From assembly GCA_946965045.2 (NCBI GenBank), contig OX337235.1, positions 2,108,001-2,172,000 on the forward strand: 64,000 nucleotides of DNA. The letters are read 5' to 3'. The position numbers and the translations under genes were made by a program. How positions within the stretch are numbered: position 1 is the stretch's first letter; each line of letters opens with the position of its first letter. The notes beneath the pieces are model-generated. The model searched no databases. It worked only from the letters and a program-made list of their open reading frames with translations, and was not told the DNA's origin. The DNA comes from Epithemia pelagica. Taxonomy: Eukaryota > Protista > Bacillariophyta. Shown piece after piece: positions 47,192 through 52,570 of the stretch.

Positions 47192-48398
47192 GGAACAGAT
47201 ATGTATCTATAATCAAAAATAATCCATCAAGAGTTTATCCATACCAGATCTGTAGACAGTCTTTGTCCAGCAATGATTATTTCATCGTATGTACTGCTAT
47301 GAAATATCCTCCCTTGCACATGTTGTCGTTTTTACTCTAGTGCGGTTTTCACTAGATAGTTAAGCGTCCGCTTGATGGATGAAGATTTTCTCCATGGTGA
47401 ACCAAGAGCTGGAGCTTCGTCGTCGCACAATTTGAGGACATCTGTTGATTTTCCCTTTGCAGGATGCTTCACTGGTCTTCCACGACAGAGCTTGCACTCT
47501 ACCAGACTCATCACATTACGATAGAAGTATTCATCCTCTGATGAGAAATGTCATGCAACCACTCAGTTACAGCTTCAAGGACTGTATGACTCTACCGTTG
47601 GTCCTCGGGAGGGATGTAGGATCCCCGCACGTGCCTATTTACTATAGCCCATTTTGTACTGTACTCGATTTTTAGTTTTAGTGTACTTAAGTATTTTAGC
47701 GGTCGTGGGAAATTCCAGCGTAAAACCAGGGTCACAAAATGGACCGAAACGCAACCGAAAGAACAACGAGAGCAGCCGTTGTGCATGAACCAATGAACCA
47801 AGGAACAAACAACCATGACAATCAAACAAGCGAGGCAACAAGCACAACAGCGAGCAAAAGCAACCAACAATCAACCAAAAAGGGCAACCAAGGCAATACA
47901 ATCAACAAACATCAAAGAAGCAGCATGGTAGAACAGCAGCGAGCGAAAAACATAGGTAAAGTGACAGCAAAAGCATCAAGAGAGACAAGCAAAGCATCAA
48001 ACAACAAAACCAAAAGCGATGCAACAATCAACCAAGACAAATGACAAAGCAACAATCAAACAAAGGCAAAAACCCACGCAATAAGCCAACAAAGGCAAGA
48101 AACAAGAATAGAAACAGAGACGACGAAAATGAAACAAACATCAATCCAACAAACACAGAAACATAACCAACAACCAAACAGATAGAACAACAGAGCAGAC
48201 CGAGAGAAAAGAGAAGCAAGACAAAGGTTAGAGATGCATTGATAATGGAAATGGATGCAACAATAAAAAAGAGCGAAGACAACACTTACGTATTGAAGCG
48301 ATCTACACGCAGAGCTCAAGCAACAATCTGCAAAGAAAGGAAGCAGTGAGAACAAAGAAAAGACGAGACAACAATCAAACACAGAAAACTTACCTAGT

Positions 48399-51300
48399 TC
48401 AGTAGCATCGTCCACCATGGTGGTGTTGGTTGTAGTAATCGCCACCATGGTGGCGATTATCACCGCGAGGATAGTATGCCTCGGAGCGGTGGTGATGGTA
48501 GGATGAACTGTAGGTGGGAGGAGGAGGCGGCGATGGGTGAAAGTGTTCCACTCTGCGGCGGTACACGGCCTCCCCAATGAGACGAGAAGAGGGAGGAGGT
48601 GGTGGCGGAGGCGTGTACGGGCGAGGAGGTGGAGGTGGAGGAGACAGTCCACGCGGAGGATAGTAGTTGTTGCGTGGGGGGGGGAGGACGTGGACTCCAA
48701 TTCACCATGGCCCCATTTCCATTGTTGTAATGAGAGGAGGAAGGCGGAGGGGGAGACCGCTGCCGGGAGCGTTCGTCGTAGTGCGACGGTCGGCTGTTGT
48801 TGTTGTGTTGGTCGGGATAGTGTTGGTGACCACTCTCCCACGATCCATGGTTGTTGTTGCTGTGGTGGTGGTCGTAATACGACGGTCGGCTGTTGTTGTT
48901 ATTGTGGTACTCCTGGTTATCGTCGTAAGGAGGTCGGCCGTTGTTGTTGTTGTGGCTTTGCCACTCGTAGGGAGGTCGGCCGTTGTTGTTGTTGTTGTTT
49001 TGGCGCTCGTAGGGTGGTCGGCCGTTGTTGTTGTTGTTGTTGTTGTTGTTGTTGTTGTTGTTGTTGTTGTTGTTGTTGTTGTTGTTGTTGTTGTTGTTGT
49101 TGTTGTTGTTGTTGTTGTTGTTGTTGTTGTTGTTGTTGTTGTTGTTGTTGTTGTTGTTGTTGTTGTTGTTGTTGTTGTTGTTGTTGTTGTTGTTGTTGTT
49201 GTTGTTGTTGTTGTTGTTGTTGTTGTTTTGGCGCTCGTAGGGTGGTCGGCCGTGGTTGCTGTTGTTGTTGTTTTCGTAGGGTGGTCGGACATTGTTGTTG
49301 TTCTCGTAGGGTGGTCGTCCGTGGTTGTCGTTGTTGTTGTTTTCGTAGGGTGGTCGGCCATTGTTGTTGTTGTTGTCAATCCCTACAGGACCACCGTCGC
49401 CCCAATCAAATCCCAATGGGGAAAACGACAGAGAGCTGCCACTACCACTCAATCCGGGGGTCTTCGTACCAGCACCGGAACCAGCAATATCGGACGATTG
49501 TTTTGGAGCTACAATACAAATAAACAAAGAGTGAGCGACTGGTATCAACAAAATAACAATCAAACAACAAACTTACGTGATGTCTCCTTCGGCTGCTCGT
49601 CTTCGTCATCCGAGGGAATGTACCAGCACGCAGTCGACGCAGTCAGATTTGACTTGTTCGACATTTCTTGGTACTTGTAATTGGTGATTGAATTTTTGTG
49701 GCGGCCAAAATCGTCTGCCAAAGCTTGCGGCACGCCGCTATTCGCAACTTTCGAGATACCAGTTCGACGGGCCGTTCGGCCCGCAAAGTTTCCATCCTCG
49801 GGGAACTTACAACGAGCGGCCAATTCTTTTGTGTTTGAATTGGCAAAGTTGGATCCAAGTTTGCCGCCAGGACGCATGCCCGTGACCGGGTCAAACTTCT
49901 CTTGGGCACGGTCCTTCACCAAATCCGTCCAGCCGAGATGTTTCGATCCACATTTTCGGGCCGCGATCACTTTCTTCGGCGCCTGGTACAAGAACACGAG
50001 TCCCTTCCAGCCGGGGGGGGGGGGTGCGCTATCTTGATGTAGTGCATAAACAACTTGTAGGTACTCCACGGGTCCTTCTCGTTTTCGATTATCATGTTGG
50101 AACGAGAATCGTGGGTTCGGTGAAATGTCGGCTTCGCCAACGTCAACTTGACGTTCTTGTGGTGGCCAGAATCAAGAGGAATGATCGCTGGCTTTCCCGC
50201 GTGTTCTCCATACGACTTGTCTAGTCTAGCTACGAAACGAAAGTCGGTCATCTTTGCTAAATGTATCTGAATAGAAGTAGAAAAAACATCAGCAGAGGTG
50301 AGAAAACAAGTCTGAAAACCCAACAATCAACCGTTTCGTACGTACCTCTAAGCATCTAAAGCTAATGTCGCGAGAGATATAGTAGAACAGGAGCATCAGT
50401 AGATCGCGAAAGACTTCAAATGGCTTTAGCACCGGATCCGCAAGCTTGCGAATGTGGTACTCATCGTCCATAATCGCCGTTGCTCGTTTCGGAAGTCGTC
50501 CGAATTCAGGTCGTGCTTTGGATGTCTTCGACCAAATCCATTCCAAGTACGCGTGATACGAACCTCTGCCCTTGAGGTCCGTTTGTCCGATGCAAATCCC
50601 ATTCGCTCGAAAAGTCGCAAACAGGTGGTTCAGTATCTTCCCCGTCGTGTTGGGTTGATAATGGAACTTGGGGTCGTGTGGATGATCGCGCCCCTTTTCG
50701 TAGCCATCCATTCGTAGGTTCATACAAAAGATGGCTAACAACGAGTTAAGTAGCCCCAACTTTCTGTCCGTCTTGGCCCCGCGTAAAGCCACAAACAACT
50801 TGGGGACTTTCAGTCCGTCATCACGCTCGGGGTCAACAATCGGCTTCGCGAGCCCGCGGTAATGCCGATGACGACGAATAATGTCAAGAAATCGCTGAAC
50901 GGATTCTTGTTTTTGCTTGTTGTAGGACTCCGAAACGCCGGCAAGCAGTCGAACGTCGAAATCGCCTATTTCGTCTGCGAACACCTCGTCACTCACTTCG
51001 GCAAACTTCCCATAGAACTCGAGGCTGTTCTCATCGTGATCTTCGTCGAGAGGGAGTGTTCGATACTCCGCAATCGAGATCTCGCCTTGCTCGTTTTCTT
51101 CAAGGTGTCGTCGTTCCACCATTGCACGAGCAATGGTCTTCGTATCTAGTGGAGACGGAGGAGGAGGAGGGGCACGCCGAGCAAGAACACCACGTGCACG
51201 GGCATTTCGGCGGCTTCGAACAGAAACGGAAGGGACAAAATCTTCGTTTGCGTCGAGATCTTCCACCATTTCATCAAACACCGTATCTTCGTCATCCGAA

Positions 51301-52244
51301 TCATCGTCGAACGGATTCGTTTGATTGTTTCTGTAGAGAGACGGGGTGTGAGAGAAGGAAGAGTCAACAATCAACAAGAAGGAAGAAACAAACACTTGCC
51401 TGTTGGGTCGTCGTCGTGGTTGAATAAGGCGGGGAGGAAGATCGTCGTCGTCGTTGTTGTCGTTTGGAGGGTGGTACTGTCGAGAGAAGAGACAGTGAGA
51501 GTGGAAACAACAATCAACAGGTAGCAGCGAATGCAACAAACGTACCTTTCTTGTCGTGCTGAGGAGCGAAGAGAACGAGGAGGATCGTTCTCCTTGTTCG
51601 ATTGCGAAGGAGGAGGACGAGGAGGAGCCTTCTTCCTGTTCTGGTTCTGTTTCTTCTTGTTGGTGGTTGTTCGGCGGGCTACTTTGCGGGCGGGGGAGGA
51701 TGAAGTTTTATTCGGCGGTTTGCTTGCGGCTGCAGCTTGCCGCTTCGAGCGGCGGGTGGCGGGAGGAGTCGTCGCCATGGTCAAGAACTTCCTGTCGTCG
51801 AAATGGCAAAAGGAAGAAAAGTGAGAGGAGAGAGGGAGGACAAGGACGATTTGACTGAGCATTGGAAGGGCAGGCGCGCAGGAAGAAAGGAAGAAAAGGA
51901 AGAAAGGAAGACTTTCCACCATGGGAATGACGAAAAAGGACGAAACAACAATCAACTTACATTCTGTCGCGCCGCTCAAGGAACCAAGGATCGGAATGCA
52001 AGCTATGGAGATCAACATCTCCTTTGCATTCGTCGATCCTTGGTTCCCAGGTCCCATGGTACCTGTCGACCGTTGGGTCGAACGGTACAAAGACCATGGA
52101 CGATGGGTCTTCCCATGGATCGTGATTTGTCGACAACCTCGACATCGAAGACGACGACGAGGACGCAAGAGAGATGGGAGACGCTGCGGTGCCGCGGTGG
52201 GATGCGGAGTAGGGCATGGGGCTGACAATGGGACGGCTCGTCAT
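48399..52244 (-). CDS. Intron-rich tyrosine recombinase (Crypton/DUF3504-like) with C-terminal Asn/Tyr/His/Pro-rich low-complexity domain; two apparent homopolymer frameshifts
   Basis: Predicted GT-AG introns 51792-51960, 51477-51545, 51331-51395, 50267-50345 and 49509-49576 all keep frame. Motifs YQPNTTGKIL..LF, SFRCLE|IHL (R), HHKNVKL (K), GRTARRTG (H-x-x-R with H replaced by R), FGRHKNSITNYKY (H...Y). Frame slips at G12 (50013-50024) and G9 (48676-48684). Confidence 0.72.
49024..49227. repeat. Pure (GTT)68/(AAC)68 microsatellite inside a degenerate NNNNGRPPYE repeat array
   Basis: 204 bp of uninterrupted GTT, flanked on both sides by GGCGCTCGTAGGGTGGTCGGCCG. Confidence 0.97.
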
Positions 52245-52570
52245 GGTGGTGGAAAACGCAACAATCAAATGGACGAAACGACGACGACGACGACAACAAC
52301 AACATGAATGACCCCTCATATTTTCACGGGTTGCAAAACAAGGCACTATGTAGCACCTAAGTACTTAGTTTGCCCCTAAATAGTGAGACGCTATGTGATC
52401 TTCTGTTCTTAAATAGTGAGACCCTAAGTGTCGTAAGTAATTTCCCCCAATATGTGACTTTTTAGACTATGTAGAGTAACGAGTTTGAAAAATCAACGGA
52501 CGATAAGCCTAACAGATAATAAGTCCTATGTGACACTTACATCCCCCCTCGGACGCAACGGAAGCGCACG

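Follow-up and report, generated by a model that had tools for sequence, protein, structure and literature searches.

Among eukaryotic DNA transposons, Cryptons are the class that is least understood and, to our knowledge, neither a transposition assay nor a defined recombination site is available for them. Recombination sites that act as folded single strands are found in bacteria, namely the integron attC site used by IntI and the CTX phage attP(+) site used by XerCD, while DIRS1-type retrotransposons combine inverted terminal repeats with an internal complementary region. Crypton DNA transposons were described by Goodwin et al. (2003) and by Kojima and Jurka (2011; PMC3212892), with the CryptonS group from oomycetes and a diatom. 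According to the published description, Cryptons lack conserved nucleotide or structural features, most CryptonS have TATGG termini, and recombination is believed to act on short direct repeats (4-6 bp) at the termini (PMC3212892).

The window analysed here is a stretch of 64,000 nt from the diatom Epithemia pelagica. With a probability of roughly 0.8, its positions 47592-52786 are one copy of a Crypton-like DNA transposon which has a tyrosine recombinase as its only enzyme, integrates at a CNAC core, carries two complementary arms as part of its own DNA and forms a palindrome when its ends are joined (Table 1). Full-length copies on C17, C9 (three copies), C3 and C16 were homologous to the window over this interval, and among the copies compared the DNA outside the homology block was different at every independent locus. 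Since the homology between copies spans 47592 to 52786, the repeat unit includes the rod hairpin as well as the two arms. Every other genomic copy had both arms and the neighbouring rod hairpin, and the arms accompanied it at five or more unrelated loci and were likewise present in non-autonomous derivatives. The initial annotation had treated the arms as flanks of an element at 47619-52537, and both parts of this claim fail: the arms lie inside the repeat unit, and the true ends are 27 nt further left and 249 nt further right. The allele of the window locus (L070) was filled and carries the element too. The segmental duplication on C9 comprised three units only, all filled, with no fourth, empty unit.

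Table 1. Positions in the window of the Crypton-like element and its parts.
Feature	Position	Strand	Remarks
Whole Crypton-like element	47592..52786 (5,195 bp)	- (recombinase gene on minus strand)	Homology limits against six other full-length copies
Target-side GT	47584..47585	+	6 nt outside left core; flank DNA, not element
Left core copy, CTAC	47592..47595	+	Constant within families; single copy in empty sites
Left cis block	47592..47693	+	Query positions 1-102 match in four short elements
Left-terminal arm	47595..47620	+	3' half of the rod's basal helix once ends are joined
Open frame rich in poly-Asn and GRPPYE repeats	48460..49563	-	Downstream of recombinase exon; no Pfam family
Recombinase catalytic exon	49560..50326	-	Two frames in this copy, split by a 12-C run at about 50012-50024
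Recombinase N-terminal part	50289..51778	-	ATG at 51778; ends ...ISFRCLE before apparent intron
Right cis block	52535..52786	+	Query positions 36-287 match in four short elements
Internal (right) arm	52538..52561	+	5' half of basal helix, directly before rod hairpin
Rod hairpin	52562..52782 (221 nt)	+	Repeated TCCTCGG-type internal loops; 3' end GATGT + 7 nt, then core
Right core copy, CTAC here	52783..52786	+	Second base inherited from target

The non-autonomous derivatives of 1.6 kb retained 102 nt of the left end and 252 nt of the right end, and the right block started within 3 nt of the right arm as initially annotated. These copies have unrelated interiors and keep both blocks, which fits cis-acting DNA sites.

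Searches for the recombinase were made with the exons taken separately, without joining across the intron or the frameshift. The catalytic exon was a single frame of 253 aa in the C17, C9, C3 and C16 copies and in the allelic L070. The N-terminal part was contiguous over 507 aa in the C17 copy and in the window copy spanned two overlapping frames, ORF 51371-52228 with the ATG and ORF 50289-51539 ending in ISFRCLE. A word-based protein search reached only four near-identical proteins of the same organism, whereas an exhaustive HMMER search reached real homologues (82 for the recombinase). A profile of 40 homologues matched XerA 5hxy (E=0.003), a XerC-like protein, an integrase and IntI4, and the matches to tyrosine recombinases were aligned over RxxR...H...Y. 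PF00589 was matched by 5 of the 40 homologues. Residues K57, R182, R185, H208 and Y217 were near-invariant among the homologues; the first catalytic Arg (FRCLE, exon 1) was placed by eye, and the usual position of the first His is occupied by Arg. The AF2 model (pLDDT 82) had Cre, Tn1549 Int, QRICH1, Flp and XerA as top fold matches, and nearly all top-ranked matches were tyrosine recombinases, with Foldseek E-values that were weak (0.2-1). The recombinase pieces of the window copy and the intact exon matched nothing in Pfam up to an E-value of 10; both PF00589 and DUF3504 were missed by the protein scanned on its own, and a PDB phmmer search with the single exon returned nothing useful. A Pfam scan of the window ORFs, and of every ORF of 110 aa or more on either strand of the intact C17 copy, detected no domain of a reverse transcriptase, RNase H, methyltransferase or DDE transposase; relaxed cut-offs gave only sub-threshold chance matches (TPR_20, Dscam_C and a plant Cys-rich domain). 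No further domain turned up in any ORF. The initial annotation of a Crypton-like element encoding a tyrosine recombinase is supported.

Two allelic empty sites for sister copies were found in the public haplotype-resolved assembly. The first reads ...CCTGA-CTAC-AACC..., and comparison of L073 with L022 showed a single CTAC in the empty allele and two in the filled one. The second reads ...GCTGTG-CAAC-AGCA...; comparison of L074 with L030 showed CTAC as the left copy and CAAC as the right copy, and the CAAC of this empty site matches the right-copy CAAC of the N_C11 insertion. Each empty site had a single 4-bp CNAC core, and each insertion had one at either end (CTAC…CTAC and CTAC…CAAC, respectively). 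The presence of two heterozygous empty sites implies recent activity. The left core was CTAC in families A, N and D and CGAC in family B, while the second base at 24 right ends was T (12 ends), G (5), A (5) or C (2). All seven informative insertions (7/7) had a one-sided core outcome, with the element's core as the left copy and the target's core as the right copy. In addition, a GT motif was found in the left flank, with G at position -8 in 13 and T at position -7 in all of 14 independent insertions. The GT is target DNA because the empty allele has it, and so are the six variable bases to the left of the element, which were found in the empty allele as well. A Tn916-like coupling-sequence model was dropped on account of these six bases. 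A 3-bp target-site duplication (NNC) was also dropped, as only 3 of 11 pairs matched and the empty sites show a 4-bp core.

The arms were present at 47595-47618 and 52538-52561 and were complementary, as initially annotated. Complementarity was well above chance: the best partner within the element for the left-terminal 34 nt was 52525-52565 at -22.0 kcal/mol (DNA parameters), compared with -14.8 for the next best partner and -15.6 ± 1.0 for the best partner in 20 shuffled bodies. The pairing layout was also reproduced (an inner helix of 8-10 bp, a TC/TC loop, bulges and an outer helix of 6 bp), and pairing continued for 2 bp past the 'TA'. Within the element, the left arm occupies the terminus (nt 4-27), whereas the right arm has a subterminal position 225 nt in from the right end. 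The fallback suggestion of the initial annotation, that the arms are imperfect TIRs of the element, came closer in that they are the element's own and the left one is terminal, but it does not fit the subterminal right arm. The termini CTACC... and ...CTACNAC are not inverted repeats of each other. Around the site, the motif GATGTAG occurred four times, and the TCCTCGG internal loops were a same-strand motif on both arms of the rod rather than inverted copies.

Joining the ends on paper through a single core produced a continuous rod of about 280 nt with the arms as its basal helix, in the order internal arm, rod hairpin, core and left arm, and with the core inside the rod opposite GAAG. The joined-end sequence folded into one rod in four families (A, N, B and D). 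The arms of family D (TTGCCTAGGTA / TACCTAGGCAA) paired perfectly and had nothing in common with those of family A (GGGATGTA / TACATCCC). Arm duplex energies within families were about -22 kcal/mol for the window copy of A, for B and for D and -16 to -17 kcal/mol for the other A copies and N, whereas D arms crossed with any other family gave -8 to -13 kcal/mol. A G-C pair was replaced by an A-T pair in family N, and the base at core position 2 (T in A, G in B) covaried with its partner in the rod (A in A, C in B). The outer helix was imperfect in B and in most A copies (CCATTG, with an A.C mismatch on the plus strand).

These features suggest that, on integration, the CTAC core of the element (4 bp) crosses over with a CNAC in the target, usually with GT six bases upstream. 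Integration leaves one core copy at each end, the left with the second base of the element and the right with that of the target. The integrated form keeps the arms apart; they could pair only once the ends have been joined, for instance in a putative excised circle, where they would make up the basal helix of a single imperfect palindrome (about 280 nt) that encloses the core. The circle junction is predicted to read ...GATGTAGAACTA-CTAC-C(A/G)TTGGTCC..., with a single CTAC. A search of the assembly for this joined-end or tandem junction found none. The palindrome spanning the junction is probably the recombination site of the element or part of it.

How the complementarity arose and how it acts can be explained in several ways. 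According to the initial annotation, an element of 4.9 kb (47619-52537) went into the central TA of a 46-bp palindrome already present in the host, and the arms are indeed complementary and would abut if the interior were deleted. This is already refuted by the two allelic empty sites, both of which lack the palindrome and show ordinary DNA as the target. Movement of the arms with the element to unrelated loci and in the derivatives also contradicts it, and the '14-bp perfect core' of the supposed empty palindrome, GGGATGTACATCCC, had no exact match in the 60.5-Mb genome, with one-mismatch matches close to the control level (seven against four). The outcome is a correction of that annotation: there is no palindromic target. 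It is also very improbable that the complementarity acts in RNA as a panhandle of a full-length transcript from either strand, with one arm at an end and the other beside the hairpin, for example in regulation or in processing of the recombinase mRNA. Strand-asymmetric loops do suggest a single-stranded form and, on the coding strand, the hairpin precedes the recombinase ATG, but an element without a reverse transcriptase has no obvious need for end-to-end RNA pairing, and both blocks are kept by non-autonomous copies whose interiors are unrelated.

The palindrome of about 280 nt may be a recombination site that acts folded, as an extruded cruciform or a single strand, with exchange of one strand pair followed by replication; we offer this as a tentative possibility. 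If true, the left core would always be the element's and the right core always the target's because only one strand pair is exchanged before replication, and the element would be a eukaryotic counterpart of integron attC or of CTX-phage integration. The arms could instead be TIR-like duplex sites, in which the same recombinase domain binds sequences of the GGGATGTA type, in inverted orientation, at the left end and inside the right end, and the arms co-evolve without pairing with each other. Covariation of the arms between families is exactly what TIR-like sites give, and therefore it is no proof of folding; the four GATGTAG motifs around the site favour duplex binding as well. We regard duplex binding as unlikely, in view of a right arm that is 225 nt from the end rather than terminal and of arms that continue the register of the rod hairpin, so that the joined form is one uninterrupted palindrome. 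The same-strand TCCTCGG loops are a strand-specific feature that inverted duplex repeats do not need, and the covariation of core position 2 with the opposite rod base also speaks against duplex sites.

Compared with the described systems, the element is like Cryptons in having a tyrosine recombinase as its sole enzyme, in the lack of reverse transcriptase and of terminal inverted or long direct repeats, and in its short terminal direct repeats, here present as a single copy in the empty site. With the recombinase signature R...(H/K)xxR...(H/W)...Y and without RNase H, methyltransferase, DDE transposase, TIRs or LTRs, it fits the Cryptons. Low copy number and a stramenopile host are shared with CryptonS; judged on its termini, it falls outside this subgroup, with a CNAC core in place of repeats of 5-6 bp that are mostly TATGG. 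Unlike published Cryptons, it has a conserved 221-nt rod hairpin at its right end and a left terminus complementary to the sequence just before this hairpin, and its protein alone misses PF00589 and DUF3504. DIRS1 elements are similar in having a tyrosine recombinase and an internal segment complementary to the terminus, an arrangement sensible only in a joined-end (circular) intermediate. Unlike DIRS1, the element lacks reverse transcriptase, RNase H, methyltransferase and inverted terminal repeats, and its short non-autonomous derivatives behave as those of DNA transposons. It is not a DIRS/Ngaro/PAT retrotransposon, since no reverse transcriptase or RNase H lies beside the recombinase. The element resembles attC and CTX attP(+) in having an imperfect palindrome that contains conserved unpaired bases and encloses the crossover point, and in the one-sided core outcome, which is expected from exchange of a single strand pair with resolution of the junction by replication. 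Differences are the eukaryotic host and the far longer rod, and the resemblance to a folded single strand is one of analogy; kinship of the recombinase to IntI or Xer extends to the shared recombinase fold only.

Overall, this diatom lineage offers exact element boundaries backed by the two heterozygous empty sites, a 4-bp core with a target motif, cis-acting DNA delimited to 102 + 252 nt by the non-autonomous derivatives, and a palindrome that is conserved, covaries and is formed only by the joined ends. In combination, they open the circular-intermediate model and the nature of a Crypton att site to direct tests.

Finally, left ends were sought for the large C family, and none was recovered. 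A search with the complement predicted for its internal arm, CCCCCCCTAATTA, hit nothing but the arms, and a looser outer-helix pattern gave total counts at the control level. Two recurrent strings from the looser search look like the ends of further families.

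The genome search covered 60.5 Mb in 23 contigs, with the window on contig 8 (2,108,001-2,172,000). The recombinase region of the Crypton-like element had six further full-length relatives, on contig 17 (93%), contig 9 (three copies, 91%) and contigs 3 and 16 (77% in the core). Homology to the window in all six ran from 47592 (47591 in one) through 52786, and the DNA beyond these limits was unrelated at every independent locus. The repeat unit started with CTACC(A/G)TTGG and ended with GCAGATGTAGAACTAC(T/G)AC, and both arms and the entire rod hairpin (52562-52782) were interior to it. 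The initial annotation had read the arms as host flanks, the halves of a 46-bp palindrome with a 4.9-kb element inserted at its central TA. The search for other copies contradicted this, as all six relatives carried both arms within 47592-52786, in the unit common to all full-length copies. Four 1.6-kb non-autonomous derivatives (family N; contigs 8, 11, 16 and 17) matched the full-length element (family A) only in two cis blocks, 102 nt at the left end and 252 nt at the right end, and their right block began at 52535, at most 3 nt from the right arm. Family B, more distant with 65% in the core (contigs 1, 5 and 6 and three copies on contig 8), had the same ends as the full-length element, and more than 25 additional hairpin-bearing right ends in the genome formed family C. 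Family D was reached through a recombinase that was 61% identical.

Coordinates of the recombinase gene, the two arms and the family D element
Feature	Strand	Position	Details
Recombinase gene	minus	ATG 51778; first coding block to about 50346; second block about 50251 to 49560	First block ends in ...ISFRCLE
Left arm		47595-47618	CCGTTGGTCCTCGGGAGGGATGTA
Internal (right) arm		52538-52561	TACATCCCCCCTCGGACGCAACGG
Family D element		L075 (retrieved locus):4797-8823	About 4 kb, same architecture; left flank GT at -8/-7, right core CAAC

Empty alleles were sought in a public, haplotype-resolved assembly of this organism (ENA ERZ21939226), in which loci were reached with the exact protein products of ORFs in the flanks. 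Light-harvesting proteins of this assembly grouped with those of Epithemia clementina, which makes the host a rhopalodiacean-type diatom. The copy on contig 16 (L022:3413-8403) split an RdRP-like ORF (PF05183), and the allelic locus L073:4001-6235 kept an uninterrupted ORF of 744 aa, which shows a recent, heterozygous gene disruption. The empty locus read ...GGATTGTTCCTGA-CTAC-AACCTTT... and the filled locus ...CCTGA-CTAC-CATTGG...GTAGAACTA-CTAC-AACC.... For the non-autonomous copy on contig 11, the empty allele read ...TTGCTGTG-CAAC-AGCAACAT... and the filled allele ...GCTGTG-CTAC-CATTGG...GAACTA-CAAC-AGCAAC.... In both allelic pairs a 4-bp core, CNAC, was thus present once in the empty site and at both ends after insertion, and the two heterozygous insertions demonstrated recent activity. 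The two empty alleles showed that the target is ordinary DNA with a CNAC core and not the palindrome that had been proposed; the empty palindrome GGGATGTACATCCC had no exact match in the genome, and sites with one mismatch were close to the level of the control (7 vs 4). The target also carried a GT six bases upstream of the core (G at -8 in 13 of 14 and T at -7 in all 14 independent insertions), which belongs to the target DNA since it was already in the empty allele. The contig 11 insertion had the element core CTAC on the left and the target core CAAC on the right. The same asymmetry was found in 7 of 7 insertions with differing cores, the left copy always matching the consensus of its family (CTAC in families A, N and D and CGAC in family B), and the second base of the right core was T in 12, G in 5, A in 5 and C in 2 of 24 right ends. 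No empty site was available for the window copy because the other allele of its locus also carries the element. In that allele (L070:9288-9823, corresponding to window 47591-47593) an element of 536 bp, bounded by 13-bp inverted ends AAGCTGAGTTCAG, lay exactly at the left terminus and replaced the three bases tCT, so that the left core was destroyed.

Both arms were recovered with the sequences and positions initially reported. When the left-terminal 34 nt were slid along the whole element with DNA energy parameters, the best duplex partner was 52525-52565 (-22.0 kcal/mol), with a runner-up of -14.8 kcal/mol and a best-partner mean of -15.6 ± 1.0 kcal/mol for shuffled bodies (n = 20), which shows that the complementarity is not due to chance. 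The pairing layout, inner and outer helices with a TC/TC loop and a bulge, was likewise reproduced. In the integrated element the arms cannot be neighbours, as 4.9 kb lie between them. Reciprocal excision would bring the ends together at a single core, and this junction was written out on paper in the order internal arm, rod hairpin, GATGT and 7 nt, core and left arm. Whichever strand was folded, the joined ends of families A, N, B and D each gave an uninterrupted rod about 280 nt long, with the arms as its basal helix and the core opposite GAAG (C-G, T-A, A x A, C-G). The inner helix was a perfect 12-bp helix in family B, and a G-C pair was replaced by A-T in family N. The family D arms TTGCCTAGGTA and TACCTAGGCAA were perfect complements of each other and unrelated to those of family A (GGGATGTA and TACATCCC). 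Arm duplexes within families reached about -22 kcal/mol for the window A copy, B and D and -16 to -17 kcal/mol for N and the remaining A copies; D arms crossed with any other family gave -8 to -13 kcal/mol, a residue of the shared outer helix only. Compensatory changes were found in 10 of 102 pairs across the whole rod. The complementarity is thus under selection, since pairing was conserved through sequence change, but the geometry is the reverse of that first proposed: the arms pair over the joined ends, on the outside of the element, and not over a deleted interior.

These joined-end features suggest that excision would yield a circle with the palindrome restored at its junction, and that this palindrome would serve as the recombination site; no joined-end junction was present in the assembly. 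The arms could instead be a pair of inverted sites at which one protein binds duplex DNA and which never pair with each other, and covariation of the arms alone fits such sites as well as it fits base-pairing. This alternative is considered quite unlikely, as the right arm has a subterminal position that keeps register with the rod, the loops of both arms have the motif TCCTCGG on the same strand rather than as inverted copies, and the second core base (T in A, G in B) covaries with its partner across the rod (A in A, C in B). These three features favour a folded, or at least a joined-end, role of the palindrome. In integron attC sites a single pair of strands is exchanged and replication resolves the product. 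The one-sided second core base (7 of 7) has a probability of about 0.008 under a 50:50 heteroduplex model. It fits either a crossover that does not extend past the first base of the core or an attC-like exchange of one strand pair resolved by replication, the latter considered rather unlikely.

The recombinase exons were searched separately. No Pfam family was matched by the recombinase protein, and an exhaustive HMMER search found 82 homologues. In a profile of 40 sequences (the query and 39 homologues) K57, R182, R185, R207, H208 and Y217 were invariant or nearly so, and 5 of the 40 matched PF00589. Among proteins of known structure the profile matched four tyrosine recombinases, XerA 5hxy (E = 0.003) followed by a XerC-like protein, an integrase and IntI4, with an alignment spanning the RxxR...H...Y segment. 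The AlphaFold model of the exon (pLDDT 82.4) had its best Foldseek matches, with weak E values of 0.2-1, to Cre, Tn1549 integrase, QRICH1 (a DUF3504 protein), Flp and XerA. The second coding block of the window copy was split by twelve consecutive C at about 50012-50024; the allelic copy and those on contigs 17, 9, 3 and 16 had CCCGCC(C/G) there and a single frame of 253 aa. The break is specific to the window copy or to the assembly; an assembly error in the homopolymer, and not the death of the copy, may explain it. Directly downstream of the recombinase exon was an open frame of poly-Asn and GRPPYE repeats, including a (GTT)n tract of about 200 nt at 49020-49230 (poly-Asn on the minus strand) whose length varied between copies. 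No other protein family was matched by any ORF on either strand of the intact contig 17 copy.

With a tyrosine recombinase only, no reverse transcriptase, no TIRs and a 4-bp terminal repeat, the element best fits a Crypton among known eukaryotic elements, in agreement with the initial annotation. The core, once before and at both ends after insertion, matches exactly the short terminal direct repeat published for Cryptons; CryptonS elements typically have TATGG termini, whereas the diatom element does not. Cryptons (Goodwin et al. 2003; Kojima and Jurka 2011, PMC3212892) have been described as having no TIRs and no conserved nucleotide or structural features, with nothing known of their transposition, and a full-text literature search for Cryptons with hairpins and circular intermediates returned no account of structured ends.

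Copies of families A, B and C occurred in identically flanked triplets 14-54 kb apart (C9:2964-3053 kb, C8:412-482 kb and C1:430-499 kb), the contig 9 trio being a segmental triplication of 41-42 kb; the triplets arose by segmental duplication of DNA that included the element and are not independent insertions. The strings CAATAACTTCCTCGG and CTATCATGTCCTCGG recurred in about 19 and about 12 places in the genome assembly, one of them correctly oriented and 6.1 kb from a family C hairpin (C5:1013574 and 1019723), and are probably the left ends of further families. In one contig 9 copy (L019, about 8775; G000:C9:3052774-3054895) the rod hairpin was broken by about 2.1 kb with 12 hairpin bases repeated on either side, a pattern suggestive of a nested insertion that duplicated 12 bp. 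Finally, about 62 bp of the window (52433-52495) aligned twice to a single stretch in the contig 17 and contig 9 copies and are a short local duplication in the window copy, just upstream of the internal arm.
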